NCBI RefSeq assembly: GCF_006345805.1
Contig: NC_043024.1
Location: 14,880,001-14,944,000, forward strand
DNA length: 64,000 bases
Direction of reading: 5' to 3'
DNA from: Octopus sinensis
Lineage: Eukaryota
Within the stretch, counting starts at the first letter, position 1, and each line of letters starts with the position of its first letter. The position numbers and the translations under genes are program-made. The notes under the pieces are model-generated. The model did no database searches. It saw only the letters and a program-made list of their open reading frames with translations, and had not been told where the DNA came from. Below are positions 12,478-64,000 of the stretch, piece by piece.

Positions 12478-12503
12478 TATAAACATATGCATATAAATAG
12501 ATA

Positions 12504-13744: not shown

Positions 13745-13750
13745 TATATA

Positions 13751-29525: not shown

Positions 29526-30722
29526 AGCCAAGAGGAAAAAATGTTATATTCTGACACATACTACCAGTATATGAAGTTTTAAAGTGTTTAGTTAACTAGA
29601 AATTGTCTGCCGTTCAAAAGGAAAAGATCCCGAAATTTTCCCGGTGTGTGTGTTAAATTATAAGGCCCAAAAAGAAAACGACTCTCCCCAGACACAATAG
29701 AATAGAAGTTTTATTAGTATGCATTAAATTACAATAGGGACATTTAAACTACGGCACCGGTGTTACTAAGTCAAGGGGAAAATTATCAACAACACCGGCT
29801 TTTTTGTATCAGTAGAATCAGATTAATTAATTTAATTGCATCGTTTGGTAATTATCTCGTGTCAAAATGAATATTAATGTTTGTGGATGAGAGAGGGCGA
29901 CTTCCAAGTTTCAGGTTCGATGCTTTATCATCTTGATGATTAAATATTTAATTTCATAACAGCCTTATTACATCTTTAATTGGTTGTCCCCCACAATACA
30001 AGAGAAGGCAAACAAGTTTTAATTATCAATTAATGAGTGATTAGTTTTCTTGATACTTCTTCACTTTTCCCGCAGCTTTCTGACCCAAAGACTGTAGTAT
30101 TTGTATCGTCATCCCGCACACCTACACATCTTTCTCTGACATTCAGCTTACATTGTGATAACTTTGCTTTTACACTCATAATGTCTGTACCTTTGCCTGA
30201 AATACAAGAATGTCGATCACACCAGAATCTCTGCTACCAGTAATTTTTGAATGTTCTCTTATTTGTTATCCTACATCAGGTCCGCTAGGAAGTTCGGGGC
30301 CCAATTAAAGAATTGTCGGTGGGACCCTCCACTCTACAAAAACTGGAGATTTATGTTTTGTGTAGTACGCCAGTCCCAGCCAAAATGCGATGGGGTCTTT
30401 ATATCCTAAAAATCATCACAAGGACCACCTTCGAGCCTGTGCACGGGGCTCGGCTTGAACAAATCTAATTGGCTTAAAACCCAGCCTGACTACATCGCTT
30501 CCATTCACTGTATTGACGTTTATCAGCATAAAACGGAAAGTTTTATTGATAAAAATTAAAATGCGAGCCACTTGGAGATTCCCTAGGCAACAACAAACAT
30601 TCAGGCTGTAAATAGAAGATATACCTACAAGCATTTTTTTCTCTATATATGAGCACAGCCTCATGATACCGAAGACAAGAAACTAAATCCTAACAGCTTT
30701 CAAGAATTCCCTGTGGATTAAG

Positions 30723-43958: not shown

Positions 43959-44429
43959 GGCCATCTGAAAAACGCCATGAAAAAATACCGTTATATGAAG
44001 GGAAATTACTGTGTTATAATTCCGCTACTAATATAAATTAAGATGAAAAGTTGATAGTAAACACGTAAGCATGGCTACTCATACGCTATACATATATACA
44101 GCATGCTTCTTTCAGTTTGCATCTACTAAATCCACTCACAAGGCTTTGTCGACCCGAGACTAAAAAAGACATTTGCCCAAGGTGCACTCAGATGAACTGA
44201 ACCCAGAGCCATGTAGTTGGGAAGCAAGCTTCTTTATCTCTTTTAAATTGCCCTAAAGGCATTACACAGAGGGGGACACTACAACACATGTGGGAACATA
44301 TAACAATTAAGAATATAAATATAAAATATGATATAATGAATGACACATGAAAAACAAATTAATATATGATAACATCAATGAATATCTGAAAATGATATTA
44401 TGAAGGGTCTGCTCCTCACCCCACACTGA

Positions 44430-45487
44430 GTAACAGCACTCGCCGCCTCTGGGTCCTAAGTCCTTTTTTCCCTTTCTCCACCACGTAGTGACATCATTCT
44501 CTCCACTATGCATTCGTAAACTTTTTTGCCGGCGGCGGGTGGTGTCTGTTCTTTTTTTTTTCTTGGGAGGGGAAATGGGGTGGGTGGATTTGGTGTCAAT
44601 ATGGGTAGTGGGGGTCTGAGTTGTCTTGGGTGGGATGGAATGGACTAGGGTGCATCTTACACAGTGTTTTTTCTTTTTTTCTCTTTCTCCTTCTGCTCTC
44701 TGTAACTTTCCATTCTTCCTCTCTTTTCTCTTCCGTCTCCACAACTGTATCCTCATCCATTTTCCTCCGTAGAGGGCAGTATGCTCTAATGTGGCCCTTT
44801 TGGCCACATTTAAAACAACGTGGTACTCTGCCCTCTACCCACGCCCTCAGCACGATTTCCCCCAACATCACCATCTCTGCCAAGTTCTCCAGGTGTCCCT
44901 CCTCCACTTGAATAATGAGTTCAAGTGTCCTTCCTTTCCACCCTCCTTCTTCCGTTTCTGTGGCTTGGAGGATAGCCACCCTCTCGATTCCAACAAGCAC
45001 AGCTGTTGTTACCCAAGCCACTTCTATATCTGAAGGAATTGATTCTACCCTCACCTTGGAAGCCTTTCTTCCAAAATATGTGGACAGATGCACTACTTCC
45101 TCTGTTTTCACCGCCAGACTCTTCTACCATATTAAATTAGATGACCATTGTCCCATGTTCTTCTTTTGGTTATGTCAGTTATCTCCTTTGATCGTTCCCT
45201 CAGTACCTTTACCATTTCTGCTTTTTTTCCTTTCAATGAGTTCACGTTATGGGTGATCGTTTTCTTTTCCATTCTCTCCATTATTCCTTTGGGGAGAAAC
45301 AACTTCACGTCGCCACCCACCTTCTGAGCCATCTTCTCATACTTTTCGGAACAGCCAAGTCCAGCTTCCTTCACTTCAACTCCGTGGCTTCAGCAAAATT
45401 CCTTGTCTTCAACAAGCCATCCATCTTTATGACTGCCCTTACCAGCTCCTCCTCCGACAACTCAGACCTGTCAACGTCTGAGTACAT
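44430..45487 (-). pseudogene. LINE ORF1/gag-like relic with a CCHC zinc knuckle; paralog at 53130-54166
   Basis: VEGRVPRCFKCGQKGHIRAYC; ATG at 45487 (54166 in the paralog); frameshifts; no ORF2 follows. Confidence 0.82.
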
Positions 45488-46227
45488 CTTCTAAACACAA
45501 AAAACTACATCCGACTCTTACAAAATCCAGACAGCCGATAACCTGACACATGCATGGAAGCAAGCTCCTTACCACACTGCCCCTACATACACATATCTAT
45601 AGCTGTTAGGTATATTGTATTTTGATTTGCAATCATAATTTACTATTAAGAATATTAAGGGTTTGTAAGTCCGTATCGTATCCTACTTCAGTGTTAGCAG
45701 TGCATTATTTTCGTTTTTAAGTTAATTTCTATTGATTAACACAGGGAAACAAAGTTTCTGTTGGGTTAATAGCAGTTTCCGTCTACCAAATTCACTCAAG
45801 GCTGTGGTAAGCCTCAGGCCAGAAAAGAAACCCCTTGCCCAAAGTGCTGTGTAGTGGAACAGAGCTTAAGACCCCATGGTTAGCAACCAAGCTTCACAAC
45901 CACACAGACAGAATATATAGATGCGTTAATGGAGCAAGCTGAATTCACATCTGAAGTTAGTTTTCCTCTGAAATCTCTAGATTTTATGCAATTCAACTCA
46001 CTCTTTCTTCTAGAAATTTGGGTACATCTCACATGAGGATATGGACACACAGTCTTAACATTAGACTCAAAATAACCACCTGATGCTTACAGATGGGGAA
46101 ACTACGTTTAAAAAAAGTGTTGTTCTTATTTTTCAGTGGCAATACATTTCTCAGCTTTTTACCTGCAATAAAATTTCCCTTCTGAAAATATATTACACGG
46201 AATCATGTGTGTTCATCATTTTGACAT

Positions 46228-46269
46228 CCATCTGATCCTGCAAAGTATAGACTTTGCAGGATCAGATGG
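46228..46269. other. Perfect 19-bp inverted repeat with a 4-nt loop (also 62716-62757; one mismatch at 54907-54948)
   Basis: ccatctgatcctgcaaagt-atag-actttgcaggatcagatgg. Confidence 0.95.
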
Positions 46270-46943
46270 GGTTTCAATGAAGATTTTCTACAGCAGTATG
46301 ACTTTCTTGTTGTCATCCCTCACTTGTTCCCAAGTAAGATAATATATACTCATGACCAGACATTTGGAAATAAATAATACTGCTTGTGTGAGGGTAATAT
46401 TGAGACAACGGTACACGCAAACACACACACACATTCACATATGACGAGCTTCTTCCAGTTTCCGTCTACCAAATTCACTCACAAGGCTTTGGTCAGCCCA
46501 AAGTGCTGTGCAGTAGAACTGAACTTGAGACCACATGGTTAGCAAGCAAGCTTCACAACCACACAGACTATACATTAGAAGGAATATATATGAAGATTCT
46601 GAAAGAATGATTTATTAAAAATATCAGTTATAATTTATTGCATTAAAGTGGACATAGATATGGTTATACAAAGTGTCTGAAGATTGCTATATCTTCTTTG
46701 TCAAACAAATACACCGATGGTTATATAACATGAGATTTATGGAAAGATTTTTGACATTATATGGTAAATCTTCTGTATGAATATATACAGGTGTAGCTAA
46801 GTGGCTGCTTTGAGAGAATACTTTACCATGGATAGGGTTACATTCATGATATTCTCTTCTCTCTGAGTCTACATGTGGATTATTCAAGGGACTTCCCTTC
46901 AAAATATGATTCATCAGGTATTGATGAATACACCTGTGTCCAG

Positions 46944-47603
46944 TCAAGTTACAATAGATAATGAATTGTTACAGGTGTCACAATGATATGGATTGTCTCC
47001 TGTATGAATGAGTCTGTGCTTGTTTAAGCTACCTACCTGAGAGAATGATTTACCACAGATATCGCATTTAAAAGGTTTGATTCCTGAATGGCAGCGCTTG
47101 TGTTTAGTTAAGGTACTTCCTTCCGAGAAAGATTTACCACAGACATCACAGTGATATGGCTTTTTTCCTGTATGAATGTTTTTATGAGTGGTCAAGTGGC
47201 TTTTTCTAGAGAATGATTTATCACAGACATCACAATGAAATGGTTTCTCTCCTGTATGAAAGTACTTGTGTTTAGTTAAGTCACATTTTTGATAGAACGT
47301 TTTGCCACAAATATCACAAAGATATGGTTTTTCTCCAGTATGTGTACGTTTGTGAGTTGTCAAGTGACTTCCTTCAGAGTATGATTTATCACAGATATCA
47401 CAGTGATATGGTTTCTCACCTGTATGTACGCGTTTATGTCTAATTAAGAGATTATTTTCAGAAAAGGTTTTATCACAAATATCACACCGATGTGGTTTTG
47501 CTACTTTGGGAATTCGTCTGGGAGTCAAGATGTTACATTTTTGAGAGGATGACTTTTCACAGATATCACTACTATCTGTTGATTTCCCTGTCCCTTCTGC
47601 CAT
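46944..47603 (-). CDS. C2H2 zinc-finger protein, paralog A, 219 aa: 6 intact fingers plus a truncated 7th
   Basis: Six CxxC-x12-HxxxH units; upstream acceptor at 47975-47976; relic fingers continue out of frame. Confidence 0.9.
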   Translation of the reverse strand: MAEGTGKSTDSSDICEKSSSQKCNILTPRRIPKVAKPHRCDICDKTFSENNLLIRHKRVHTGEKPYHCDICDKSYSEGSHLTTHKRTHTGEKPYLCDICGKTFYQKCDLTKHKYFHTGEKPFHCDVCDKSFSRKSHLTTHKNIHTGKKPYHCDVCGKSFSEGSTLTKHKRCHSGIKPFKCDICGKSFSQVGSLNKHRLIHTGDNPYHCDTCNNSLSIVT

Positions 47604-48348
47604 CTCTTGAGGAAAATAAACTCAATCCTTTCACTTTCTCAAATAGATTTTTAAATAATTTCTCCTCTACCACAACTATATATATACAGTTGTACTTATA
47701 GTTTAATCATACATATTTTAACACCTATATTCCCATCAACAGTGATCTTTGTTGATATCTAAAGATGCTGCAAATTTATTCAACTTTAATTGGAATCCAA
47801 AAATCTTGCACACATTCCAAACAGTGATGTTTGAGAAATTTTGTTTACAAAAGAAATTTCAATAGAATTCCTCAAAGATTTATGTAAATCCATGCATCCG
47901 TTCTGTCTGTTCTGAATACTATCTTCCAGGATACCAAAGTGAAATATTCTCTCTTGTCAATGTCATCTGAGGTTCTGAAATAAAAGAGAAACAGGATAAG
48001 ATATATAGCATACTTAAGAAGATAAGATAAAAACAGTGAGAATTCTAGGTTTCAGTCATTGGAATGTGACCATGCTGACCTAATCAAAGCCATGTGAGTG
48101 GATTTAATAGATGGAAACTGAATGAAGTGTGTCAAATAGCTGTGTGTGTGCATATATATATATATATATATATAAATGTGTGTGTAGAGCAAAGATGGGA
48201 ATGTGGGAAAATATGTATAGAAAATCCTAGAAGAGCTGGCACTAAACTTTGGCATCAAGAGTTATACAATCCTCCAAACAGGACATCATTGCATTGTTCC
48301 AAAGGTCCCACCCATCCTGTCAAGAATAAGGACCAGATACAGCAGTAC

Positions 48349-50002
48349 ATTGCTGGATGCTATGCAGGCATCTTTACTGTCGAAGATCAAAATGTTCCAT
48401 CTCTCTCACCTCTGACACCGAACTCTATATCTACTATGAAATTTACACCAGCAATGCTACAACGCCACCTTAAGAATAAATGCAACTATGCCTCTCCTGG
48501 TCTCGATGGTGTTACATACCTACTTCTCAAACGCGGGGAGTACTTTCTTCTCAACCAACTTTCACTATTCTTCCAATTCTGTCTTGTCAATGGTGCTACT
48601 CCAGAGCAGTGGAAAACTGCCAGTGTTATCCCTCTGTTTAAAAAAGGTGACCGCACATCGCCTGTCAACTATCACCCTGTTAGTCTTTCTAGCTGCATCG
48701 CCAAACTGATGGAAGTCTCACAGCCTCATCCAGCCGTCATAATTTGGTTTTATTCCTAACTCCAGCTGCTGTAATCAACTTTGTGTTTCTTGAGGACATT
48801 ACCCAAATCACTGATCACGGATCCTGGGTGGATGTTGTTTACCTGGACTTTGCTAAGGCTTTTAATTCTGTGCAACACAAAAGACTTATGGTGAAACTCT
48901 CTGCAATGGGTGTAAAAGACGATCTCTATAACTGGTTGAAGTCCTTTATTATCGGCCTAAAAGAGGTTGTCACAGTTCTAGGACAGCACTCTTCACCCTA
49001 TGAGATGACATCTGGTGTACCACAGGGATCTGTTCTTGGCCCCCTTTTATTTGTTGCATATGTTAATGACATAGATGCCAACCTAAAGAATGCCACAGTG
49101 CTGAAATATGCAGATGACATCAAGCTGTACCTCAAAATAAAGAGGTCTGATCCTGTACACTATAGATCTCTATTGCAATCAGACCTGGACACAATGCAGC
49201 AGTGGATCATGGACTGGCAACTAAAGCTGGCTGTGGAATAATGTACCACCATGCATTTTGGGAGGAAAAACCCAGTGTCTACTTACTCCCTCCACAACAC
49301 TAATCTCAAAAAGTCTTCTTGTGAACATGATCTGGGCGTTATTGGCGACAGCGATTTGCGTTGGACAAAACACATCGCTAAAATTGCCAAGAAGGCTGAG
49401 GGTGTCTTGGCATCACTCACCAAGTCTTTTGTGAGCTGCTCTCTGGCTATATATCAGCGGCTTTATATAGCTATGGCATGCCTTACTTTCCTGGGTATGG
49501 ACACATTGAAACTCCGACATCTGGCAGTGGACTTGGCAGACACCCATAAAATTATTAACCATCTTACAAACAATGTTTGTAAGATGGTTACAAACCCCAT
49601 CACAGAGTGCAGAATGTGGCCATGTTTCCATGACTGTGATGAGCACCTTTTCAAACTCCACCTGTCTAACACCCGTGGACATATTTACAAAGTCACAAAA
49701 CAGCACAGCTCCCATGACTTTCGGAAACATTTTTTCACGCTAAGAGTTGCTGAAGCATGGAACAGACTGCCGGCATCAGTTGTTAGTTGTCGGAGCACTG
49801 CATCCTTCAAAACTTCCATGCTTCCTGAGATTCGCCAACACTACACCTGATTTTCCCCGCTCCATACACACGCAAGCATGTATCTGACTCATACACTGTT
49901 CACTTTCCAGACATTTGTACATTACTGCATATACTTTATCCGCACTTTCTAACAAGTTGTGGTGCACCTGAGCACTGTATACAATAATTTCATTATTATT
50001 AT
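48349..50002 (+). mobile_element. 5'-truncated, internally deleted CR1-clade LINE, present only in copy A
   Basis: SPGLDGV, WKTASVIPLFKKG, YLDFAKAF, GVPQGSVLGPLLF, YADD; (ATT)n tail; absent from B and C. Confidence 0.93.
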
Positions 50003-50701
50003 AAATTACACAAAAATGAAAATAACACTGACATCTCACTTTAACAGATGTCTCCTTCTCGGTGAATGCTGCCATAATCGTTGCCTTCAGTTTATCTTTG
50101 ATTGTTACAAGGAGTTTTGTCGGTCTCTTACTCAACTGTGCCCAACACATAATAATCAAGGGGGTTGCAGTGTGTGGAGTCAAGTGTCCAGATGTTAGGG
50201 GCGATGTGATTGTAAAAATTGTCTGACAGCCATGACTGGGTTCTCCTGCTTGTGTGGCACAGTGCAGTCCTGTTGCCAGACACAAGGTCTCCCAACAACC
50301 ACCCTTTTGATCCAGGCCAGCACTACCTCCTCCAGGCACTTGATATAGATCTTCGTATTGAGTTTGAGACCATGTGGGAAAGTGAATGGAGGAATAACGT
50401 CATCATCACTAGTGATTACTCCAAACACCATCATGTTGACTGGATGTTTGGTTTTTATCCCTTTCGTTACAAGTCCCCAGATTGATAAACAATCCGAAAT
50501 GTTCCGGCGAGTATGCCAACCAATACGGCATATCATTTCCAGAATTCTAAGAGAGTGAATTGCGTCATGGTCCTGTTTTTCCACACAGACGGTGACCAAT
50601 TGACCCCTATCATATTGCGTAGGGGAGAAAATCAAAAACAAGGAGCATCAGCGAAATAAAAAAAACCCATAAAATTGCGACAGTTTACCCGTAGCACCCT
50701 G
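50003..50701 (-). mobile_element. maT/DD37D-type Tc1-mariner relic in copy A, retaining part of the catalytic core
   Basis: KHPVNMMVFGVITSD...PPFTFPHGLKLNT..YIKCLEEVVL.WI..V..GRP.VWQQD; TIR cagggtgctacggg with TA at 50702. Confidence 0.8.
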
Positions 50702-51135
50702 TAGATGTATTCAAATTATAGATACGGACACATTATGTGATAAGGTAGTTAAAAACAATTACTACATTACCATCACTTGAAGCTCACTGTATATTTCTTC
50801 CAGAAGGCGTGACTAAGACGACGGCCCACAGCTTCTCCAAACACCGTCCGCTGCTCGGCTCTCTTTCTCTCTCCAGTTTCTTACTATTGGCAATATATTA
50901 ACAGTGTACATTTGTTTGTTTGTTTAACATTATATTCACGAATTAAAGTTAATCAGTTGCAAAGGATCGAAACAAAAGCCCTTCTTTTGGCGTCGATTCA
51001 TAAACGGGTGCAACGGACAGCGATAAGGGGGTGGAGACGGACTTCCGGTTGACCATGCGCATGACGACGTCCGGGAACGCAAACAAACACCGGTTGTCAA
51101 GCAGTGCTTGGTAACCAACACAAACATTCGCGGCC
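50702..51135 (-). promoter_or_regulatory. Candidate promoter and first-exon cassette for paralog A (a partial inverted copy at 51653-51802)
   Basis: CpG-rich patch with ACTTCCGG (ETS) at 51041-51048 and ATGCGCAT; near-identical to the B and C cassettes. Confidence 0.5.
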
Positions 51136-51347
51136 ATGCTGGAGTCTTTTATTTGTTCCAGTAATTTGACTGCGGCCATGCTGGAGTACCGTCTTTAGTC
51201 GAACAAATCGACCCTAGGATTTATTCTTTTTAAGCTTAGTAGTTATTCTGTCGGTCAATATTTCCGAACCGCTATATATGTGTGTGTTTATGTATGTGTA
51301 TACTTGTGTGTTTGTGTCTGCCGATTTGTTCGACTAAAGGCGGTACT

Positions 51348-51401
<54 letters not shown>

Positions 51402-51800
51402 GTATGTGTGTGTTTGTGAGAGAGAGAGTGTGTGTGTGTGTATGTATATACATGTGTGTTTGTGTCTGTCCCTCACCATCGCTTGACAACCGATGTTGGT
51501 GTGTTTACTTGATAGTTCGAAAAGATTGACCGATAAAAGAACCTCTGGGCTTACAAAGAATAAGTTCTAGGGTCGATTTGTTCGACTAAAGAGGGTACTC
51601 CAGCATGGCCGCAGTCAAATGACTGAAACAAATAAAAGACTCCAGCATTGTCGTGAATGTTTGTGTTGGTTACCAAGCACTGCTTGACAACCGGTGTTTG
51701 TTTGCGTTCCCGGAAGTCGTCATGCGCATGGTCAACCGGAAATCAGTATCCACCCCTTATCGCTGTCCGTTGCACCCGTTTATTAATCGACGCCAAAAGA

Positions 51801-52035
51801 AGGCGGCGTGCTGGCAGACTCGTTAGCGCGTCGGGCGAAATGCTTAGCGGTATTTCGTCTGTCGTTACGTTCTGAGTTCAAATTCTGCCGAGGTCGACTT
51901 TACCTTTCATCCTTTCGGGGTTGATAAATAAAGTACCAGTTTCGCACTGGGGGATGGATGTAATCGACTTAATCCGGTTGTCTGTCCTTGTTTCTCCCCT
52001 CTATGTTTAGCCCCTTGTGGATAGTAAAGAAATAA
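51801..52035 (+). mobile_element. SINE A at the A/B tandem-duplication junction
   Basis: Starts at aagg shared with the truncated cassette; followed by (TA)n. Confidence 0.85.
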
Positions 52036-52134
52036 TATATATATATATATATATATATACGGCTGGCTTCTTTCAGTTTATGCCTACTAAATCCACTCAC
52101 AAGGCTTTGGTCGAACCGAGGCTATAGAAGACAC

Positions 52135-53037
52135 GGATCTTTACACTTTGACCGGCAGATTTTTAAAATAATTTCTTTGTAACTAAACACTTTTAAACTT
52201 CGTATACTGGTAGGGTGTTACATAAAACATCTTTTTCTCTTGGCTTTCTTGAGAAAAATTTGTAGTTTGTAAGCTATTTCTTGCATTTCGGCAATTTCAA
52301 CCAATCAATGACGTCTGTTAAGGTGAATACAATATCTGCCGTATTTTGTCAACAGCATTTTCTGGTGATGTCATATGAATTTGTCACTGTTATTTATGAG
52401 AAAAAAGATACCCTGTGGTCATAAACAGAGTCACTCGTAAACAAAGCTGGATAACAAAACCGTTCTCTCTTTACTGTCCACCCATAATTATGACCCTAGT
52501 ATCGATATGTTGCATTTCAATCTGTTTTAGGATTAGGGCTAGAGTTAGGGTTAGAGGTGGGAGAAGGGTATCTTTTTTTCTTCAGAAATGTAAATAAACC
52601 CAATCTGTTTCTAAACGAATATATAATATGTAATGTGTGTATCTGTGCAACAGAGAGGGAAATTAAAACTGCGTATGTTGTGAACTTAGAATATGTGTTT
52701 ATTAATAAAAGTTTAATAACGATAATCTTTTATTCATACGAACGTAAATGATATGAAATATGTCATAAATAACAGTGACAAATTTATATGACACCACCAG
52801 AAAATGTTGTTGACAAAATACGTCAGATATCGTACTCACCTTAATAGACGTCATTGATTGGTTGAAATTGCCGAAATGCAAAAAATTAAACAACAAATAG
52901 CTTCCAAACTACAGAATTTTCTCAAGAAATCCAAGAGAAAAAGATGTTTTATGTAACACACTACCAGTATACGAAGTGTAAGTGTTTAGTTACAAAGAAA
53001 TTATTTAAAAAATCTGCTGGTCAAAGTGAAAAGATCC
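52135..53037. mobile_element. Complete non-autonomous DNA element with long TIRs starting GGATC, inserted in a SINE B
   Basis: ggatctttacactttgacc...ggtcaaagtgaaaagatcc; TSD gaagacac/aaagacac (7 of 8); the uninterrupted SINE is in copy A near 44165. Confidence 0.85.
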
Positions 53038-55608
53038 AAAGACACTTGCCCAAGGTGCACAAAGATGAACGGAACCTAGAATCATGTAGTTGGGAAGGAA
53101 GCGTCTTTATTTCTGTTAAATTGCCAGACTAATCCTTTTTCCCCTTTCTCCATCACTTAGTGACATCATTCTCTCTGCCATACATTCGTAACCTTTTTCA
53201 CCTGTGTGGAGGGGGTCTTCTAAATTTTGTGGTGTCTGTTCTTTCTTTTTTTCTTGTGGGGGGAAACGGGATGGGTGTGTTTTGTGTCTGGAGGGTGGGT
53301 CTGAGTGGTCTTGGGTGGGATGGAATGGACTAGGGTACCACATCATACTCAGTGTTTTTTCTTTTTTTTTCTCTTTCTCTTCTGCTCTCTGTAACTTTCC
53401 ATTCTTCCTCTCTTTTCTCTTCCGTCTCCACAACTGTATCCTCAACCATTGTCCTCCGTAGAGGGCAGTATGCTCTAATGTGGCCCTTTTGGCCACATTT
53501 AAAACAACGTGGTACTCTGCCCTCTACCCACACCTTCAGCTCAATTTCCCCCAACGTTACTGTCTCTGCCAAGTTCTCCAGTAGACCCTCCTCCACCCGA
53601 ATAATGATTTCAAGTGTCCTTCCTTTCCACCCTTCTTCTTCCACTTCTGTGGTTTGGAGGACAGCTACCTTGTCGTTTCCAACAAGGACAGCTGCTGCTA
53701 CACAAAACGCTTTTATATCCAATGGAATTGCTTCTACCCTCACCTTGGAAGTCTTTCTTCCAAGGTACGTGGGCAGAAGCACTACTTCCTGTTTTCATTG
53801 CCACACTCGCCTCTTCTACTGTCCTAAAATGGACAACCATTGTCCCATACGTTCTTCATTTCGTTATGTACATTATCTCCTTTGACTGTTCCCGCAGAAC
53901 CTTTTTTCCTTTTCACGAGTACACCTTATAGGTGATCATTTTTTCTCCATCGTCTCCATAATTCCTTTGGGGAGCAATAACTTCATATCGTCTCCCTCCT
54001 TCTGAGCCATCTTCTCATACTCCTTCAGACCAGCCAAATCTAGCGCCCTTCGCTTCACCTCCGTGGCTTCTGCAAAACTCCTTGTCTTCAACAAGCCATC
54101 CATCTTTATGACTGCCCTTACCAGCTCCTCCTCTGACAACTCAGACCCGTCAACGTCTGAGTACATCTTCTAAACACAAAAAACTACATCCGACTCTTAC
54201 AAAATCCAGACAGCTGATAACCTGACACATGCATGGAAGCAAGCTCCTGACCACACTGCCCCTACATACACATATCTATAGCTGGTAGGTATATTGTATT
54301 TCGATTTGCAATCATAATTTACTATTAAGAATATTAAGGGTTTGTAAGTCCGTATCGTATCCTACTTCAGTGTTAGCAGTGCATTATTTTCGTTTTTCAG
54401 TTCATCTCAACTGATTATCACAAGGAAACAATGTTTTTGTTGTGTTAATAGCAATTTCCATCTACCAAATTCACTCAAGGCTGTGGTAAGCCTCAGGCCA
54501 GAAAAGAAACCCCTTGCCCAAAGTGCTGTGTAGTAGAACAGTGCTTAAGACCCCATGGTTAGCAACCAAGCTTCACAACCACACAGACGGAATATATAGA
54601 TGCGTTAATGGAGCAAGCTGAATTCACATCTGAAGTTAGTTTTCCTCTGAAATCTCTAGATTTTATGCAATTCAACTCACTCTTTCTTCTAGAAATTTGG
54701 GTACATCTCACATGAGGATATGGACACACAGTCTTAACATTAGACTCAAAATAACCACCTGATGCTTACTGATGGGGAAACTACATTTGAAAAAAGTGTT
54801 GTTCTCGTTTTTCAGTGGCAATACATTTCTCAGCTTTTTACCTGCAATAAAATTTCCCTTCTGAAAATATATTACACGGAATCATGTGTGTTCATCATTC
54901 TGACATCCATCTGATCCTGCAAAGTATAGACTTTGCAGGATGAGATGGGGTTTCAATGAAGATTTTCTACAGCACTATGACTTTCTTGTTGTCATCCCTC
55001 ACTTGTTCCCAAGTAAGGTAATATATACTCATGACCAGACATTTGGAAATAAATAATACTGTTTGTGTGAGGGTAATATTGAGACAAACACACACACATT
55101 CACATGACAAGGTTCTTCCAGTTTCTGTCTACCAAATTCACTCACAAGGCTTTGGTCAGCCCAGAGTGCTGTGCAGTGGAACTGAACTTGAGACCACATG
55201 GTTAGCAGGCAAGCTTCACAACCACACAGACTCTACATTAGAAGGAATATATATGAAGATTCTGAAAGAATGTATTATTGAAAATATCAGTTATAATTTA
55301 TTGCATTAAAGTGGACATAGATATGGTTATACAAAGTGTCTGAAGATTGCTGTATCTTCTTTGTCAAACAAATACACCGATGGTTAATAACATGAGATTT
55401 ATTTATGGAAGATTTTTGACATTATATGGTTAATCTTCTGTATGAATATATACAGGTGTAGCTAAGTGGCTGCTTTGAGAGAATACTTTACCATGGATGG
55501 GGTTACATTCATGATATTCTCTTCTCTCTGAGTCTACATGTGGATTATTCAAGAGACTTCCCTTCAAAATATGATTCATTAAGTATTGATGAATACACCT
55601 GTGTCCAA

Positions 55609-56268
55609 TCAAGTTACGATAGATATTGATTTGCCACAGGTGTCACAATGATATGGATTGTTTCCTGTATGAATGAGTTTGTGTCTATTTAAGCTACCTA
55701 CCTGAGAGAATGATTTACCACAGATATCACATTTAAAAGGTTTGATTCCTGAATGGCGACGCTTATGCTTAGTTAAGGTACTTCCTTCCGAGAAAGATTT
55801 ACCACAGACATCACAGTGATATGGCTTTTTTCCTGTATGAATGTTGTTATGAGTGGTCAAGTGGCTTTTTCTAGAGAATGATTTATCACAGACATCACAG
55901 TGAAATGGCTTCTCTCCTGTATGAAAGTACTTGTGTTCGGTTAAGTTACATTTTTGATAGAATGTTTTGCCACAAATATCACAAAGATATGGTTTTTCTC
56001 CTGTATGTGTACGATTGTGAGTTGTCAAGTGACTTCTTTCAGAGTATGATTTATCACAGATATCACAGTGATATGGTTTCTCACCTGTATGTACGCGTAT
56101 GTGTCTAATTAAGAGATTATTTTCAGAAAAGGTTTTACCACAAATATCACAACGATGTGGCTTTGCTACTTTGGGAGTTCGTCTGGGAGTCAAGATGTTA
56201 CGTTTTCGAGAGGATGACTTTTCACAGATATCACTACTGTCTGTTGATTTCCCTGTCTCTTCTGCCAT
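55609..56268 (-). CDS. C2H2 zinc-finger protein, paralog B, 219 aa: 6 intact fingers plus a truncated 7th
   Basis: Colinear with A; about 18 amino-acid differences counted by eye. Confidence 0.9.
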
Positions 56269-56733
56269 CTCTTGAGGAAAATAAACTCAATCCTTTCACT
56301 TTCTCACATAATTTTTAAATAATTTCTCCTCTATCACAACTATATATATACAGTTGTACTTATAGTTTAATCATACATATTTTACCACCTATATTTCCAT
56401 CTGCAGTGATCTTTGTTGATATCTAAAGATGCTGCAAATTCATTCAACTTAAATTGGAATCCAAAAATCTTGCACACATTCCAAACAGTGATGTTTGAGA
56501 ATTTTTGTTTACAAAAGAAATTTCAATAGAATTCCTCAAAGATTTATGTAAATCCATGCATCCGTTCTATCTGTTCTGAATACTATCTTCCAGGATACTG
56601 AAGTGAAATATTCTCTCTGTCAATGTCATCTGAGGTTCTGAAATAAAAGAGAAACGGAATAAGATATATAGCATACTTAAGAAGATGAGATAAAAACAGT
56701 GAGAATTCTAGGTTTCAGTCATTGGAATGTGAC

Positions 56734-56955
56734 TGTTATGTGTGGTTTGTGTTCTAATGGGAAAGACAACCAAATGAAAACCATTGTTATTGTTTACGTA
56801 TTTTATTGACTATTACATGATACACGGACGACACATATTACAGTGTAGTAATACATTGTATACTTTACACACAGTTTGTACTATTCACTACAAAATAGTG
56901 CCAAGAGTGGGGAGTAGTTTGGCATACACAAACACACAGATATGAATGTGTAACA
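56734..56955. mobile_element. Solo LTR, 222 bp, present only in copy B
   Basis: TGTTA...TAACA termini; 5-bp TSD GTGAC at 56729-56733 and 56956-56960; empty site in A, C and D. Confidence 0.82.
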
Positions 56956-57693
56956 GTGACCTTACTGACCTAATCAAAGCCATGTGAGTGGATTTAATAG
57001 ATGGAAACTGAATGAAGCCTGTCGTCTGAGAAATAGCTGTGTGTGTGTGTGTATGTATGTATGTGTGTGAAGCAAAGAAGGGAATGTGGGAAAATATATC
57101 AAGAGTTGGCATCAAGAGTTATACAATCCTCCAAACAGGACATCATTGCATTGTTCTAAAGGCCCTATCCATCCCATCAATAATAAGGACCAGATACAGC
57201 AGTACCTTGAGATTTGAAAGCCCCCAGTTATTAAATATCTTGCCAAGAAAAACCTTGTTGATCTACATGCAGTAGCAGCAGTAGATATTTTCAAGAAAAA
57301 CCTTGAGCTTCTGCAGTCCAAGATCCCAGATGAAGCTACATTAGGACAAGGGCAGCAATATCAAACTCACCCTTTCACTGAATAGGTGATGATACTGGTG
57401 GTGACCCAGCATGGTTGCAGCCCGTAGACTTAACCACATAAAATGTGTGTGTTTCCAGGTGGTGTGTAATGCTCATGAGCAAAAGACTTCTTTTCACTTT
57501 GCTCCAGTTCACTCATCTGCAAATGGATAAACCAGCAACAAAATAGCTTTCTGTTCAGAGGGAATGCTAGCCTGCCCACCTGCCCAGACAACAGGGTGGG
57601 TGGCATAATTCGAAAGCTACAACAGTGGAAGAAAGCGCAGTGTAACAAGCGGTGTATAACAACATCCAATGCTGCAGTCGATACAGCGATATA

Positions 57694-58378
57694 CAGGGTG
57701 CAGTGAATAAAATGCCATCTAAATTACACAAAAATGAAAATAACACTGACATCTCATTTTAACAGATATATTTACCAAAATTACATAAACATGTCTTGAA
57801 ATACTAAAGAGTAAATTATTCAATGAAATCGCCAGTGGCTTTCACCACGGCCTCCAGATGACTTCAGAATCCCCTGCAATTCTTCTTAACTGTCTCCTTG
57901 TTCAAGTTGGTGAATGCTGCCATAATCGTTGCCTTCAGTTCATCTTTGATTGTTACAAGGAGTTTTGTCGGTCTCTTACTCCACTGTGCCCAACACAAAA
58001 TAATCAAGGGTGTTGCAGTGTGTGGAGTCAAGTGTCCAGATGCTGTGTCCTCACACATACTCAGAGGAACAAGCATGCACGCACAACCCATTAGCTTCCT
58101 CTTCGCAACTGACAGTTGACAAGACAATATGTGGTCACGGACATCACCGAATTCACTGTTTACATAATTTCGAGTCAAAACGAAAGGTCGCCGCCAACCG
58201 GTACAGCATGTCGTTTCCAGAATTCTAGGAGAGTCAACTGCGTCATGGTCCTGTTCTTCCACACTGACGGTGACCAACTGACCCCTATCATATTGTGGAG
58301 AAGGCAAAATCAAAAACAAGGCCCATCAGCGAAATAAAAAAACCCATAAAATTGCGACAGTTTACCCGTAGCACCCTG
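57694..58378 (-). mobile_element. Internally deleted maT/DD37D element in copy B
   Basis: TIRs cagggtgc with TA flanks; C-terminal TKDELKATIMAAFTNLNKETV. Confidence 0.85.
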
Positions 58379-58822
58379 TAGATGTATTCAAATTATAGAT
58401 ACGGACACATTATGTGATAAGGTAGGTAAAAACAATTACTACATTACCATCACTTGAAGCTCACTGTATATTTCTTCCAGAAGGCGTGACTAAGACGACG
58501 GCCCACAGCTTCTCCAAACACCGTCCGCCGCTCGGCTCTCTTTCTCTCTCCAGTTTCTTACTATTGGCAAATATATTAACAGTGTACATTTGTTTGTTTG
58601 TTTAACATTATATTCACGAATTAAAGTTAATCAGTGGCAAAGGATCGAAACAAAAGCCCTTCTTTTGGCGTCGATTCATAAACGGGTGCAACGGACAGCG
58701 ATAAGGGGGTGGAGACGGACTTCCGGTTGTCCATGCGCATGACGTCTTCCGGGAACGCAAACAAACACCGGTTGTCAAGCAGTGCTTGGTAACCAACACA
58801 AACATTCACGGAAACGAAACAT

Positions 58823-58871
<49 letters not shown>

Positions 58872-59461
58872 CTTGTGTGTTTGTGTCTGTCCCTCACCAT
58901 CGCTTGACAATCGACGTTGGTGTGTTTACTTGATGGTTCGAAAAAATTGACCGATAAAAGAACCTCTGGGCTTACAAACAATAAGTCCTAGGGTAGATTC
59001 GTTCGACTAAAGAGGGTACTCCAGCATGGCCGTGAATGTTTGTGTTGGTTACCAAGCACTGCTTGACAACCGGTGTTTGTTTGCGTTCCCGGACGTCGTC
59101 ATGCGCATGGTCAACCGGAAGTCCGTCTCCACCCCTTATCGCTGTCCGTTGCACCCGTTTATGAATCGACGCCAAAAGAAGGGCTTTTGTTTCGATCCTT
59201 TGCAACTGATTAACTTTAATTCGTGAATATAATGTTAAACAAACAAACAAATGTACACTGTTAATATATTTGCCAATAGTAAGAAACTGGAGAGAGAAAG
59301 AGAGCCGAGCGGCGGACGGTGTTTGGAGAAGCTGTGGGCCGTCGTCTTAGTCACGCCTTCTGGAAGAAATATACAGTGAGCTTCAAGTGATGGTAATGTA
59401 GTAATTGTTTTTACCTACCTTATCACATAATGTTTCCGTATTTATAATTTGAATACATCTA
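58379..59461. promoter_or_regulatory. Palindrome centre: two divergent promoter-like cassettes (58379-58810 -, 59030-59461 +) around a ~220-bp SINE/microsatellite spacer
   Basis: ETS sites at 58719-58726 and 59115-59122, ATGCGCAT cores, candidate donor GTAATG at 59393. Confidence 0.55.
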
Positions 59462-60135
59462 CAGGGTGCTACGGGTAAACTGTCGCAATTTTATGGTTTT
59501 TTATTTCGCTGATGGGCCTTGTTTTTGATTTTCTCCCCTACGCAATATGATAGGGGTCAGTTGGTCAACGTCTGTGTGGAAAAACAGGACCATGATGCAA
59601 TTCAGTTTCTCAGAAGTTTGGAAACGACATGCTGTACCGGTTGGCGGCGACCTTTCGTTTTGACTCGAAAATATGTAAACAGTGAAATCGGTGGTGTCCG
59701 TGACCACATATTGTCTTGTCAACTGTCAGTTGCGAAGAGGAAGCTAATGGGTTGTGCGTGCATGCTTGTTCCTCTGTGTATGTGTGTGTGTGGACACTTG
59801 ACTCCACACACTGCAACCCCCTTGATTATTAGGAGTTGGGCACAGTTGAGTAAGAGACCGACAAAACTCCTTGTAACAATCAAAGACGAACTGAAGGCAA
59901 CGATTATGGCAGCATTCACCAACTTGAACAAGGATACAGTCCAGAAGAATTGCAGGGGATTCTGAAGTCATCTGGAGGCCGTGGTGAAAGCCAATGGCGA
60001 TTTCATTGAATAATTTACTCTTTAGTATTTCAAGACATGTTTATGTAATTTTAGTAAATATATCTGTTAAAATGAGATGTCAGTGTTATTTTCATTTTTG
60101 TGTAATTTAGATGGCATTTTATTCACTGCACCCTG
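59462..60135 (+). mobile_element. Internally deleted maT/DD37D element in copy C
   Basis: TIRs and TA flanks; same internal structure as in B. Confidence 0.85.
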
Positions 60136-60798
60136 TATATCGCTGTATCGACTGCAGCATTGGATGTTGTTATACACCGCTTGTTACACTGCGCTTTCTT
60201 CCACTGTTGTAGCTTTCGAATTATGCCACCCACCCTGTTGTCTGGGCAGGTAAGTTAGCATTCCTCTGAACAGAAAGCTATTGTTGCTGGTTTATCCATT
60301 TGCAGATGAGTGAACTGGAGCAAAGTGAAAAGAAGTCTTTTGCTCATGAGCATTACACATCCACACAGTGGGAACAAATGGAACACACATTTTATGTGGT
60401 TAAGTTACAGGCTGCAACCATGCTGGGTCACCACCAGTATCATCACCTATTCAGTGAAAGGGTGAGTTTGATATTGCAGCCCTTGTTTGTATTGTATGTC
60501 ATGATGTCAGTTCATCTGGGATCTTGGACTGCAGAAGCTCAAGGTGTTTCCCTAAAATATCTGCTGCTGCAACATGTGAATCTCTAAGGTTTTTCTTGGC
60601 AAGATTTTTAATAACTGGGGGCCTTCGTATCCCGAGATATTGCTCTATCTGGTCCTTATTCTTCACAGGATGGGTGGGACCTTTGGAACAATGCAATGAT
60701 GTCCTGTTTGGAGGATTGTATAACTCTTGATGCCAAAGTTTAGTGTCAGCCCTTCTAGGATTTTCCCACATTCCCATCTTTGCTCTACACACACATTG

Positions 60799-60830
<32 letters not shown>

Positions 60831-61385
60831 ATATGCACACACACAGCTATTTGACACACTTCTTTAATTTTCCATCTATTAAATCCACTCACATGGCTGT
60901 GATTAGATCAGGATGGCCACATTCCAATGACTGAAACCTAGAATTCTCACTGTTTTTATCTCATCTTCTTAAGTATGCTATATATCTTATTCTATTTCTC
61001 TTTCATTTCAGAAACTCAGATAACATTGACAGAGAGAATATTTCACTTTGGTATCCTGGAAGATAGTATTCAGAACAGATAGAACGGATGCATGGATTTA
61101 CAGAAATCTTTGAGGAATTCTATTGAAATTTCTTTTGTAAACAAAATTTCTCAAACATCACTGTTTGGAATGCGTGCAAGATTTTTGGATTCCAATTAAA
61201 GTTGAATGAATTTGCATCATCTTTAGATATCAACAAAGATCACTGCAGATTGAAATATAGGTGGTAAAATATTTGTGATTAAACTATAAATACAACTATA
61301 TATATATCTATAGTTTTGATAGAGGAGAAATTATTTAAAAATCTATTCGAGAAAGTGAAAGGACGGAGTTCATTTTCCTCAAGAG

Positions 61386-62045
61386 ATGGCAGAAGGGACA
61401 GGGAAATCAACAGACAGTAGTGATATCTGTGAAAAGTCATCCTCTCAAAAATGTAACATCTTGACTCCCAGACGAACTCCCAAAGAAGCAAAGCTACATC
61501 GCTGTGTTATTTGCGGTAAAACTTTCTCTGAAAATAGCTACTTAGTTACACACATACGTGTACATACAGGTGAGAAACCATATCACTGTGATGTCTGTGG
61601 TAGATCATTCTCTGAAGGAAGTCACTTGACAACTCACAAACGTACACATACAGGAGAAAAACCATATCTTTGTGATATTTGTGGCAAAACGTTCTATCAA
61701 AAATGTCACTTAACCGAACACAAGCACTTTCATACGGGAGACAAGCAATTTCACTGTGATATCTGTGATAAATCATTTTTTCAAAAGAGTCACTTAACAG
61801 CACATAAGAACATCCATACAGGTGAGAAGCCATATCATTGTGATGTCTGTGGTAAATCTTTCTCGGAAGGAAGTACCTTAACTAAACATAAACGTAGCCA
61901 TTCAGGAATCAAACCTTTTAAATGTGATATCTGTGGTAAATCATTCTCTCGGAAAAGTAGCTTAAACAGTCACAAACTCATTCATACAGGAGACAATCCA
62001 TATGATTGTGACACCTGTTGCAAATCATTATCTATTGTAACTTGA
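61386..62045 (+). CDS. C2H2 zinc-finger protein, paralog C, 219 aa: 6 intact fingers plus a truncated 7th
   Basis: Colinear with A and B; about 35 differences from B; acceptor at 61010-61011; AATAAA at 62350. Confidence 0.9.
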
Positions 62046-62998
62046 CTGGACACAGGTGTATTCATCAATACTTAATGAATCATATTTTGAAGGGAAGTGC
62101 CTTGAATAATCCACATGTAGACTCAGAGAGAAGAGAATATCATGAATGTAACCCCATCCATGGTAAAGTATTCTCTCAAAGAAGCCACTTAGCTACACCT
62201 GTATATATTCATACAGAAGATTAACCATATAATGTCAAAAATCTTTCCATAAATCTCATGTTATATAACCATCGGTGTATTTGTTTGACAAAGAAGATAT
62301 AGCAATCTTCAGACACTTTGTATAACCATATCTATGTCCACTTTAATGCAATAAATTATAACTGATATTTTTAATAAATCATTCTTTCAGAATATTCATA
62401 TATATTCCTTTCTAATGTATAGTCTTTGTGGTTGTGAAGCTTGCTTGCTAACCATGTGGTCTCAAGTTCAGTTCTACTGCACGTCACTTTGGGCTGTCCA
62501 AAGTCTTGTGAGTGGATTTGGTAGATGGAAACTGGAAGAAACTCGTCATGTGAATGTGTGTGTGTTTGCGTGTACCGTTTCTCAATATTACCATCATACA
62601 AGCAGTGTTATTTATTTCCAAATGTCTCGTCATGAGGAAATATTACCTTACTTGGGAACAAGTGAGGGATGACAACAAGAAAGTCATAGTGCTGTAGAAA
62701 ATCTTCATTGAAACCCCATCTGATCCTGCAAAGTCTATACTTTGCAGGATCAGATGGATGTCAAAATGATGAACACACATGATTCCGTGTAATATATTTT
62801 CAGAAGGGAAATTTTATTGCAGGTAAAAAGCTGAGAAATGTATTGCCACTGAAAAATGAGAACATCACTTTTTTCAAATGTAGTTTCCCCATCAGTAAGC
62901 ATCAGGTGGTTATTTTGAGTCTAATGTTAAGACTGTGTTGCCATAAATTTTTCATATTGACCATATACCCATGTGAGATGTACCCAAATTTCTAGAAG

Positions 62999-63560
62999 CC
63001 AGCCTACGTATGCATACCTTCCCTTCTTGGGACACAAAACTCTACTTGTGAAGACCCGTTGAGGCAAGTGAGGATCAGAATCGAAATCGATCAATGGAAA
63101 TTGCAGATGTGTTACCAGTGCCGGTGGCATGTCGAAACTCTACTTGTGAAGACCCGTTGAGGCAAGTGAGGATCAGAATGGAAATTGATCAATGGAAATT
63201 GCAGATGTGTTACCAGTGCCGGTGGCATGTAAGAGAACCTTCCGTTTCGTGACCATTGCCAGCACCGCCCTGTTTCATGTCCGTTGCCAGCCTTGCCTGG
63301 CCCTCGTGCCAGTGGCACATAAAAAGCACCATCCGTTCGTGGCCGTTTGCCAGCTCTGTCTGGCACCTGTGCGGGTGGCAGGAAAAAAGCACCCACTACA
63401 CTCACGGAGTGGGTGGCGTTAGGAAGGGCATCCAGCCGTAGAAACACTGCCAGATTTGACTGGGCCTGATGAAGCCTTCTGGCTTCACAGACCCAAGTAG
63501 AACCGTCCAACCCATGCTAGCATGGAAAACGGACGCTAAACGACGATGATGATGATGATG
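62999..63560 (+). mobile_element. RTE 3' UTR insertion present only in copy C, with an internal 98-bp tandem duplication and (GAT)n tail
   Basis: The empty site ctagaag|aaagagtg is in A and B. Confidence 0.85.
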
Positions 63561-64000
63561 AAAGAGTGAGTTGAATTGCATAAAATCTAGAGATTTCAGA
63601 GGAAAACTAACTTCAGATGTGAATTCAGCTTGCTCCATTAACGCATCTATATATTCCGTCTGTGTGGTTGTGAAGCTTGGTTGCTAACCATGGGGTCTCA
63701 AGATCAGCCACACTACACAGCACTTGGGGCAAGGGCTTTCTTTTCTGGCCTGAGGCTTACCACAGCCTTGAGTGAATTTGGTAGATGGAAACTGCTATTA
63801 ACACAACAAAAACATTGTTTCCTTGTGATAATCAGTTGAGATGAACTGAAAAACGAAAATAATGCACTGCTAACACTGAAGTAGGATACGATACGGACTT
63901 ACAAACCCTCAATATTCTTAATAGTAAATTATGATTGCAAATCGAAATACGATATACCTACCAGTTATAGATATGTGTATGTAGGGGCAGTGTGGTTAGG

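Follow-up and report, generated by a model that had tools for sequence, protein, structure and literature searches.

How has a long inverted repeat with a gene on each arm and only a short spacer, a layout that should be prone to cruciform formation and breakage, managed to last? The question is raised by a 64-kb stretch of Octopus sinensis DNA, CM016886.1:14,880,001-14,944,000 (GCA_006345805.1), which we refer to as the window. A sequence-only reading had described a simple two-arm palindrome there, carrying a divergent pair of C2H2 zinc-finger (ZNF) genes. Our analysis shows that two tandem arrays of one unit, running in opposite directions, meet at this palindrome. The stability puzzle is largely answered by the sequence itself: one half of a short interspersed nuclear element (SINE) was deleted at the centre, the spacer has since been inverted, and the arms are diverged.

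The palindrome joins two opposed tandem arrays

Self-comparison of the window revealed two blocks, 54246-58811 and 59030-64000, that are 92-99% complementary. The left arm (unit B) ends at 58811 and the right arm (unit C) starts at 59030, leaving a spacer of 218 nt (58812-59029); both the place of the repeat and its spacer of ~220 bp had been read correctly. The region contains no Ns. Over the whole arm, B and C are 93.3% identical (5398 aligned bases), with identity reaching 98.8% in the inner 500 bp alone. Folded as a single strand, the central 721 nt form one hairpin of -341 kcal/mol (z = -63 vs shuffles), and the inverted repeat is thus far beyond chance. The arms had been put at 4.5 kb or more. 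Long arms are real, but this length was an understatement: in the window and the sequence beyond it, arm C runs on to ~65403, giving ~5.7-6.4 kb per arm. For this we used a locus (L002) that extends the O. sinensis sequence 8 kb past the window; extended coordinates continue the window numbering.

The idea of a simple two-arm palindrome did not survive this comparison, as the arms are parts of opposed arrays, A B facing C D (E). The order in O. sinensis is A(-) B(-) / C(+) D(+), to which O. vulgaris adds a fifth unit, E(+). The arrays are ~14 kb each and mosaic. Repeat units measure 6.5-7.5 kb, and each contains one intact C2H2 zinc-finger open reading frame (ORF). Unit A is a direct repeat of unit B (~92% identity), while unit D(+), which starts at ~65975 in extended coordinates, is a direct copy of C (94.7% over 4.1 kb) with an intact 215-aa ORF. 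ORFs B and C both read away from the centre. The units, their ORFs and the sequences at their boundaries are as follows (SINE1 and the A' stub are described below).

44087-51269, minus strand: unit A, the outer (-) unit, a direct repeat of B (SINE1 mapping, Pfam and terminal inverted repeat (TIR) search)
44088-44234: reverse-complemented SINE1 head of unit A (SINE1 mapping)
46944-47603, minus strand: ZNF ORF A, 219 aa, six complete C2H2 fingers and a truncated seventh
51145-51274: alpha-type SINE1 3' half of unit A (SINE1 mapping)
51270-51440: microsatellite block (TA)n/(TG)n/(GA)n at the A-B boundary, with a stray 29-bp SINE1 fragment at 51322-51350
51441-51803, plus strand: A' stub (363 bp), an extra inverted copy of the start of a (+) unit
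51804-52034, plus strand: full-length copy of a second SINE family at the A-B boundary, followed by (TA)n at 52035-52059
52048-58811, minus strand: unit B, the left palindrome arm
55609-56268, minus strand: ZNF ORF B, 219 aa
58812-59029, plus strand: B-C spacer, colinear with the reverse complement of the O. vulgaris centre
59030-64000 and on to ~65403, plus strand: unit C, the right palindrome arm
61386-62045, plus strand: ZNF ORF C, 219 aa

Unit B consists of a split SINE1 head, a gag-like remnant, the ORF, a 227-bp insertion, a putative Tc1/mariner remnant and the inner-arm segment. Unit C contains the inner-arm segment, the putative Tc1/mariner remnant, ORF C and a private 562-bp insertion, and unit A also holds a gag-like remnant (zf-CCHC Pfam match).

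Unit boundaries lie in the microsatellite of a SINE

SINE1 is an interspersed repeat of ~362 bp with at least 11 other copies in the window. Its consensus has a head (1-144) and a 3' part that runs to 362, with an internal (TA)n/(TG)n microsatellite (~150-175) between them. We term it SINE-like from its size, its copy number, its lack of an ORF and its defined 3' end; a search for a tRNA-related head found no tRNA with ARAGORN in the window and none with Rfam at 43-64 kb (E <= 0.1).

In each unit, the promoter-side end holds a SINE1 3' half, and the far end holds a SINE1 head. At a tandem boundary these form a single SINE1 with extra material within the microsatellite, and the head-to-head junction consists of two SINE1 3' halves around (TA)n. 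All unit boundaries, tandem and inverted, map to consensus positions ~150-175, i.e., to the (TA)n microsatellite. The symmetry axis of the palindrome thus falls in a self-complementary (TA)n tract of SINE1, as in fold-back events. Two boundary types can be told apart. Type alpha, a divergent 3' half with the stray 29-bp fragment, heads A(-) and, mirror-wise, O. vulgaris E(+). Type beta heads the B-C centre, D and the A' stub.

The A-B boundary keeps a symmetric centre, in which both SINE1 3' halves lie tail-outward around (TA)n/(TG)n: opposite the 3' half of A (51145-51274) lie an inverted 3' half and 163 bp from the start of a (+) unit. The latter two make up the A' stub, which joins a beta-type SINE1 3' half (51441-51639) to the first ~163 bp of the unit. 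Together with the end of A, the stub forms a mini-palindrome (50980-51269 vs 51515-51803, 92%). Its SINE half is 94.7% identical to the half at the B-C centre vs 88.8% to that of A itself.

At the B-C centre of O. sinensis, one SINE half is left. The spacer is composed of a 16-bp filler, aaacgaaacattgcca (58812-58827), on the B side beside (TA)n (~58828-58865), and one beta-type SINE1 3' half (58858-59029) that covers consensus positions 151-334. An asymmetric central deletion thus removed the other SINE half, leaving a spacer of 218-262 bp in the two species and the short filler.

Rfam 'miRNA' matches (mir-297, mir-1277 and mir-3149) at 51282-51415, 58808-58890 and 60780-60850 were rejected as sub-threshold, low-complexity artefacts; they score 29-39 bits vs gathering scores of 81-100 and lie on TA/TG microsatellites. 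The microsatellite of the C-D boundary contains a 300-bp hairpin, 95.7% self-complementary and foldback- or MITE-like (miniature inverted-repeat transposable element; L002 14201-14499, extended 65586-65884). The O. vulgaris C-D boundary is ~240 bp shorter than that of O. sinensis.

The inverted junction predates the split from O. vulgaris

We compared the locus with its O. vulgaris counterpart (L004), GCA_951406725.2 OX597840.1:12,145,104-12,171,154, a 26-kb stretch starting in the A' stub. The O. vulgaris assembly was made de novo from Oxford Nanopore Technologies (ONT) reads and Omni-C, and the O. sinensis assembly from PacBio continuous long reads and Hi-C (PMC10700109). The species split ~2.5 million years ago (PMC10700109).

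The order in O. vulgaris is B(-) / C(+) D(+) E(+). The B(-)/C(+) junction, the A' stub (L004 1-265) and the C-D junction are all present. From the A' stub through the end of B, the two species are 96.2% identical over 6.2 kb, and units C and D are ~96% identical. From 1.35 kb outward, positions at which the O. sinensis arms B and C differ show matching B and C states in O. vulgaris. The shared junction and arm states, together with the orthology of the ORFs, indicate that the inverted junction, the stub and at least four units predate the species split. The junction on which the sequence-only reading had staked its case is therefore real, since an independent assembly carries it. The description of a long-lived, gene-bearing inverted duplication with divergent ZNF genes likewise holds, with an intact ORF in each arm and the junction in two species. 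As for age, synonymous divergence (dS) between paralogues is 0.07-0.27, which is 1.5-5 times the mean orthologue dS of ~0.05. This would date the duplications to a few to roughly a dozen million years back, an estimate that is rough because it uses only ~150 synonymous sites.

The centre differs between the species in its orientation. The 262-bp O. vulgaris centre is colinear with the reverse complement of the O. sinensis spacer, filler included. The order in O. sinensis is arm-filler-(TA)n-SINE half-arm, and in O. vulgaris the spacer that these B and C arms enclose is its exact reverse complement; SINE1 mapping placed the central half on the (+) strand in O. sinensis and on the (-) strand in O. 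vulgaris. Since the filler is common to both, the central deletion occurred once, before the split, and the spacer was inverted later in one lineage, evidently by exchange between the near-identical inner arms. A flip of the spacer, which the sequence-only reading had proposed looking for among haplotypes, was thus found between species. In the inner ~0.9 kb, both O. vulgaris arms have the same state at the B/C diagnostic sites, so the crossover behind the flip leaves no trace and cannot be placed.

Another inversion, of ~660 bp, lies at the far end of D and is specific to O. sinensis (L002 20425-20660, extended 71806-72045 and beyond, vs O. vulgaris L004 ~19302-19961). It includes a SINE1 head and (TA)n, and the visible breakpoint has gtgtg microhomology. 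Comparison with unit C indicates that the O. vulgaris arrangement is ancestral. A minus-strand SINE head to the right of D, considered as a sign that C-D is an inverted block within a direct array, belongs to this local inversion.

As to the expected fragility of the palindrome, the centre did break, by loss of one SINE half, and was later inverted. What the expectation overlooked are the central deletion, which stabilised the centre, the 218-262 bp spacer and the ~7% divergence of the arms. Distance between inverted repeats and their divergence both reduce fragility and hairpin- or cruciform-driven instability (PMC10164571), and spacers of natural palindromes can be as short as 77 bp (PMC8327919).

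Flanks are homogenised while ORFs stay distinct

Quartet-informative sites are mosaic along the unit, with 46 supporting AB/CD, 43 AC/BD and 20 AD/BC. A simple mirror phylogeny, in which A would pair with D and B with C, was rejected as having the weakest site support. Units B and D differ by 1.0% over 615 bp, and a 145-bp stretch is the same in C and D. Paralogues differ by 0.6-1.9% in the inner 500 bp, where orthologues differ by 1.8-2.9%, and in distal blocks orthology is broken; for example, sC is 4.4% from sA and 8.0% from vC (sA-sD denote O. sinensis units and vB-vE O. vulgaris units). The mosaic quartets, the closeness of the inner arms and the broken distal orthology argue that units continue to exchange sequence, in direct as well as in inverted pairs. 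The non-coding flanks are thus kept 1-6% diverged by gene conversion and unequal exchange, in which all units take part.

The ORFs show a different pattern. They keep clean orthology (orthologues differ by 1.4-2.8%, paralogues by 4.5-10%), and paralogue divergence is higher in the ORFs than in the flanks. All are intact (8/8 across both species), with ratios of nonsynonymous to synonymous divergence (dN/dS) of 0.18-0.67. The corresponding ratio of proportions of differences (pN/pS) is 0.70 at DNA-contact codons vs 0.27 elsewhere in the fingers, and 12/24 contact positions are variable vs 44/195 others (Fisher p = 0.006). The ORFs thus escape homogenisation, remain orthologous and diversify preferentially at DNA-contact residues, a pattern that is usual for functional, diversifying ZNF genes.

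One block departs from this picture of the flanks. The gag-like block of B (53129-54000) differs from O. vulgaris B by only 2.2%, yet its divergence from A, C and D amounts to 17-20%; it seems that either another copy of the retroelement supplied this block or conversion never reached it.

The ORFs encode tandem-finger C2H2 proteins

Pfam matched the ORFs to zf-C2H2 (E = 4e-33) and zf-H2C2_2 (E = 6e-57), and a pattern search found six complete C-X2-C-X12-H-X3-H fingers with TGEKP-type linkers, followed by the truncated seventh. These are the features of tandem-finger C2H2 zinc-finger proteins. There was no Pfam match to a KRAB domain, and the ORFs are not of the vertebrate KRAB-ZNF type. The proteins of ORFs B and C differ at exactly 35 residues, the number that had been estimated from the sequence.

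A full-length protein search returned only generic ZNFs with at most 58% identity. When the 37-aa N-terminus was the query, its single relative was the O. vulgaris orthologue, P0121, a 'hypothetical predicted protein' of 105 aa. At that place (L004 10001-10660), O. vulgaris has an intact 219-aa ORF orthologous to C, and P0121 is a mis-spliced gene model. In an exact look-up, the four O. sinensis ZNF proteins were absent from the clustered protein collection. This suggests that the annotated protein sets of the two species lack this ZNF subfamily or model it wrongly.

Origin of the opposed arrays

We favour a model in which the opposed arrays probably arose by inverted copying at the (TA)n of the SINE, followed by central deletion, spacer flip, conversion and further copying. 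How the junction was born we infer from its structure. The start would be a short tandem array with unit boundaries within the SINE. This array would then have been copied in inverted orientation by fold-back or template switch, with the self-complementary (TA)n in the SINE as the axis, resulting in two SINE 3' halves tail-outward around (TA)n. In the simplest history, an inverted duplication of ~1.6 units, its axis in the (TA)n of the inner unit's SINE, would have been followed by the asymmetric deletion at the centre; the right side would then have gained more tandem copies, and the left side the stub.

Later copying at the same microsatellites evidently added units and planted the 363-bp inverted stub at the A-B boundary. 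Since the stub is an extra inverted copy that inversion alone could not create, duplication-type template switching did take place at these microsatellites. Since alpha and beta boundaries are present on both sides, two or more units in tandem (inner beta, outer alpha) were probably in place before the inverted event. The earlier suggestion that the cluster grew by palindrome formation followed by tandem copying is therefore true of the A' stub, which was copied after the inverted junction had formed, but probably not of the whole cluster, because the two boundary types imply an array that was there before.

Several observations weigh against this model. The mirror topology AD/BC, which a single inverted duplication of [A B] predicts, is the weakest of the three (20 sites), and the proposed mirror partners A and E differ, with an ORF dS of 0.24; to accommodate this, the model must assume heavy conversion later on. 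The outer ends of the arrays are not mirror images, as E stops ~560 bp past its ORF, and when the right flank was compared with the left flank of A as its possible mirror, only interspersed SINEs matched. SINE1 fragments are also common inside units, so some coincidence of boundaries with SINEs is expected by chance. With regard to expression, no transcript-derived contig encodes the array ORFs, and clustered-protein searches found no protein at least 90% identical to them. Lastly, a distal inversion within a five-unit direct array would give the same end state.

Alternative explanations

This inversion is the alternative that survives best, and we consider it possible, if unlikely. A direct array of five (-) units, with pre-existing boundary types alpha-beta-alpha-beta-beta, would have had its distal three units inverted through exchange between SINE (TA)n tracts, which creates a single head-to-head junction. 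A (TA)n tract reads the same on both strands, which allows two of them to pair in inverted register, and every breakpoint is at the (TA)n tract of a SINE1 copy. Read in pre-inversion order for C-D-E, the boundary types (A alpha, B beta, E alpha, D beta, C beta) resemble a duplicated two-unit super-repeat. That inversions occur here is clear from the spacer flip and from the ~660-bp O. sinensis-specific inversion with its gtgtg microhomology, and outer ends that are not mirror images also fit. However, the scenario takes one step more than inverted duplication and by itself cannot yield the extra inverted A' stub (51441-51803). There was also no tail-to-tail junction in the 26 kb of O. vulgaris or in the O. 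sinensis sequence examined.

A different proposal, which we hold to be distinctly unlikely, concerns not the origin of the palindrome but its retention: that it was kept because the centre holds a shared, mirrored bidirectional promoter through which both divergent ZNF genes are regulated together. It takes further the sequence-only reading, in which one promoter had become a mirrored bidirectional unit. Two regions bear on it.

58715-58753, minus strand: inner-arm motif cluster with an ETS-like CCGGAAG, an ACGTC core and CATGCGCATG, mirroring 59088-59126
61285-61385, plus strand: proximal upstream region of ORF C, with TATAAATA ~95 bp upstream of the ATG

From its motifs, the inner-arm cluster is a candidate distal promoter. 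Gene pairs with a bidirectional promoter are defined by divergent transcription starts that lie no more than ~1 kb apart and use one promoter. The two clusters (58715-58753 and 59088-59126) are 335 bp apart, and the innermost ~430 bp of each arm falls outside the Tc1/mariner-type remnant. The inner-arm segment (the innermost ~300-430 bp) is almost invariant in all eight units, its innermost 300 bp with the ETS-like, ACGTC and CATGCGCATG motifs being near-invariant in every one, and local GC content is 43.6% vs ~37%. An acceptor-like site, ttttcctcaag/ag, lies 2 nt before the ATG and is kept in all eight units, with one substitution each in vB and vE; it would be compatible with a spliced 5' untranslated region (UTR). 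Despite these features, divergence between orthologues in the segment (~1.7-3.3%) is no lower than elsewhere, and the invariance among paralogues is therefore explained by conversion rather than by extra constraint. The same segment also heads A, D and E, away from the palindrome centre, which makes it a per-unit element and not a product of mirroring. In addition, the starts of ORFs B and C are 5.1 kb apart, and each ATG has a TATA-like box ~95 bp upstream, TATAAATA in C and D, TATAAGTA in sA and sB and TCTAAGTA in vB and vE. On these sequence features, the promoter could be proximal, or distal and followed by a spliced 5' UTR. A sigma-70 promoter and terminator scan gave 8 sites vs 9.9 expected; its model is bacterial and uninformative for octopus.

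A replication-based inverted triplication, either origin-dependent inverted-repeat amplification (ODIRA) or a duplication-inverted triplication-duplication (DUP-TRP/INV-DUP), would produce a direct-inverted-direct arrangement in a single step, starting from short inverted repeats. The (TA)n tracts at the junctions, short and self-complementary, fit this requirement (PMC4689423), and the A' stub points to template-switch-like copying. Such an event is nevertheless highly improbable here, as it predicts both a head-to-head and a tail-to-tail junction. In the sequence covered, which reaches beyond E in O. vulgaris and to the far end of D in O. sinensis, only one such junction, head-to-head, was seen, and non-array sequence follows E in O. 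vulgaris.

Finally, an assembly artefact, be it a long read that is chimeric or folded back on itself or two contigs joined in the wrong orientation at the microsatellite, is almost certainly not the explanation: although the junction lies within (TA)n, which is error-prone for assemblers, and the O. sinensis assembly comes from PacBio continuous long reads, a missed-adapter or fold-back read is ruled out by the ~7% divergence of the arms and the private insertions of 227, 562 and ~900 bp, the sequence has no Ns, a diverged second copy of the junction is present at 51.3-51.8 kb, and the same junction with orthologous arm variants in the independent ONT-based assembly excludes an error of this kind.

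Mobile elements and other features of the window

Insertions and element remnants mark the individual units.

~48094-50050: RTE-like element in unit A (Pfam RVT_1)
50694-50703: 5' TIR of the putative Tc1/mariner remnant in unit A (TIR search)
57692-58380: Tc1/mariner-type remnant in arm B, with TA-flanked TIRs TACAGGGTGC
59460-60137: Tc1/mariner-type remnant in arm C, with TA-flanked TIRs TACAGGGTGC

Unit B has insertions of 227 bp (56738-56964) and ~900 bp (52134-53037). Both are common with O. vulgaris B and are thus older than the split. Unit C has an insertion of 562 bp (62998-63559) with a (GAT)n tail; it is non-LTR-like (lacking long terminal repeats) and has copies elsewhere in the window. 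As neither O. vulgaris C nor units A, B and D have this insertion, it is younger than the split. The sequence-only reading had noted private insertions and labelled them a solo LTR in B and an RTE element in C. The insertions (227, ~900 and 562 bp) are there, and the labels can be checked only in part: the C insertion is non-LTR-like, the 227-bp insertion of B could not be classified, and the only Pfam reverse-transcriptase match is in unit A (48744-49241), not in C.

The ~900-bp insertion has inverted arms of ~265 bp, is foldback-like and splits the SINE1 head of unit B. Relatives of its arms occur at 614-800, 4841-5063 and 29525-29630, suggesting a foldback-type element family. The RTE-like element (48094-50050) interrupts the Tc1/mariner remnant in unit A only, and a second copy of its 3' part lies at ~9182-9928. 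Tc1/mariner elements are marked by a DDE transposase and by TIRs within a TA target duplication; the transposase-like ORF of the remnant had no match in Pfam or the PDB.

Elsewhere in the window are two intact multi-finger C2H2 ORFs, at 10244-11488 (-), encoding 414 aa, and at 30723-32288 (+), encoding 521 aa, with only 66-75% DNA identity to the array units. The presence of these further ORFs places the window inside a C2H2-ZNF cluster; such clusters have been described from a few small O. sinensis chromosomes (PMC9795677). A second long inverted pair, 12424-15209 and 39289-42061 (~2.8 kb, 94.6% identity, 24 kb apart), could be two mobile-element copies or another segmental inverted duplication in the cluster. 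The window also contains a 78-bp satellite array (1341-4424) of ~39 copies, with ~95% identity and higher-order periods of 155 and 233 bp, and a tandem repeat (21676-22784) with a period of 210 bp and 5.3 copies that are 98% identical.

Discussion

The locus belongs to a known kind, the conserved inverted duplication that carries genes, is unstable at its centre, inverts its spacer and undergoes gene conversion; no new type of element or mechanism is established here. Among its closest likenesses are the gene palindromes of primate X and Y chromosomes, which include P1-P8 and 26 human X palindromes (PMC8327919, PMC3723533). In both systems inverted arms carry protein-coding genes around a short spacer (from 77 bp on the human X) and exchange sequence from arm to arm. 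Primate X palindromes show spacer inversions and instability of the centre (PMC8327919), and P6 of the human Y behaves likewise (PMC3723533); as in the octopus locus, spacers are deleted or inverted between species, and the arm genes are conserved and under purifying selection. In the definition of large ampliconic palindromes, arms measure at least 8 kb and are at least 99% identical to each other (PMC8327919). The octopus locus has two arms and a spacer, ongoing conversion and constrained, conserved arm genes, but its arms of ~5.7-6.4 kb and 93.3% identity are below both values. Compared with primate palindromes, the octopus arms are less similar (93% vs >99%) and smaller (~6 kb per unit vs 8-140 kb or more), each arm is a tandem array, conversion is patchy and spares the ORFs, which diverge, and the genes encode DNA-binding ZNFs rather than belonging to testis-expressed families.

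Conserved long inverted repeats with divergent or convergent pairs of paralogous genes are also found in Caenorhabditis (Zhao et al. 2007, PMC1803023). There, too, whole genes and intergenic sequence are duplicated in inverted orientation, and structure is more conserved than sequence, implying ongoing homogenisation. Unlike the octopus locus, however, the Caenorhabditis repeats are near-perfect and lie outside opposed tandem arrays, and no SINE microsatellite axis is described for them.

Fold-back palindromic duplication and ODIRA-type inverted amplification (PMC4689423, PMC5314454) resemble the locus in having the axis at a short self-complementary sequence, a centre stabilised by asymmetric deletion, and small inverted stubs. 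Asymmetric deletions at the centre are reported for a mouse transgenic palindrome (Akgun et al. 1997, as cited in PMC8327919). Those cases are somatic, experimental or tumour-derived, whereas the octopus product is germline, fixed and at least 2.5 million years old; unlike an ODIRA triplication, the octopus locus has a single inverted junction.

Within octopods, tandem clusters of C2H2 zinc-finger genes have been reported (PMC9795677, citing Albertin et al. 2015). The locus shares with them the gene family and organism, lineage-specific local duplication and fast change at DNA contacts. The published clusters, as far as these accounts go, are described as tandem, and an opposed-array or palindromic layout and SINE-microsatellite boundaries were not found in the literature searched.

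Octopus genomes have undergone very large lineage-specific expansions of C2H2 zinc-finger genes and carry a high SINE load, and growth of octopus ZNF clusters at the base-pair level is not described in the literature searched. This locus provides a dated case, older than the ~2.5-million-year split, in which copying, deletion, flip and conversion can be read from the sequence of two species. An unstable centre, an inverted spacer and selection that preserves the arm genes, all thought to typify the palindromes of mammalian sex chromosomes, thus occur in an invertebrate gene cluster. Distinctive here is that the flanks are homogenised by conversion while the DNA-binding ORFs stay distinct.

A specific and possibly general clue is that all boundaries lie within the self-complementary microsatellite of one SINE. 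Whether SINE-borne (TA)n is a general rearrangement hotspot, seeding tandem and inverted duplications as well as small inversions, we regard as rather doubtful. If true, the locus, with five unit boundaries, one inverted stub and the palindrome centre in this microsatellite, would be a case caught in the act, and the hotspot would link the expansion of octopus SINEs to the explosive local growth and the scrambled orientation of C2H2 clusters.

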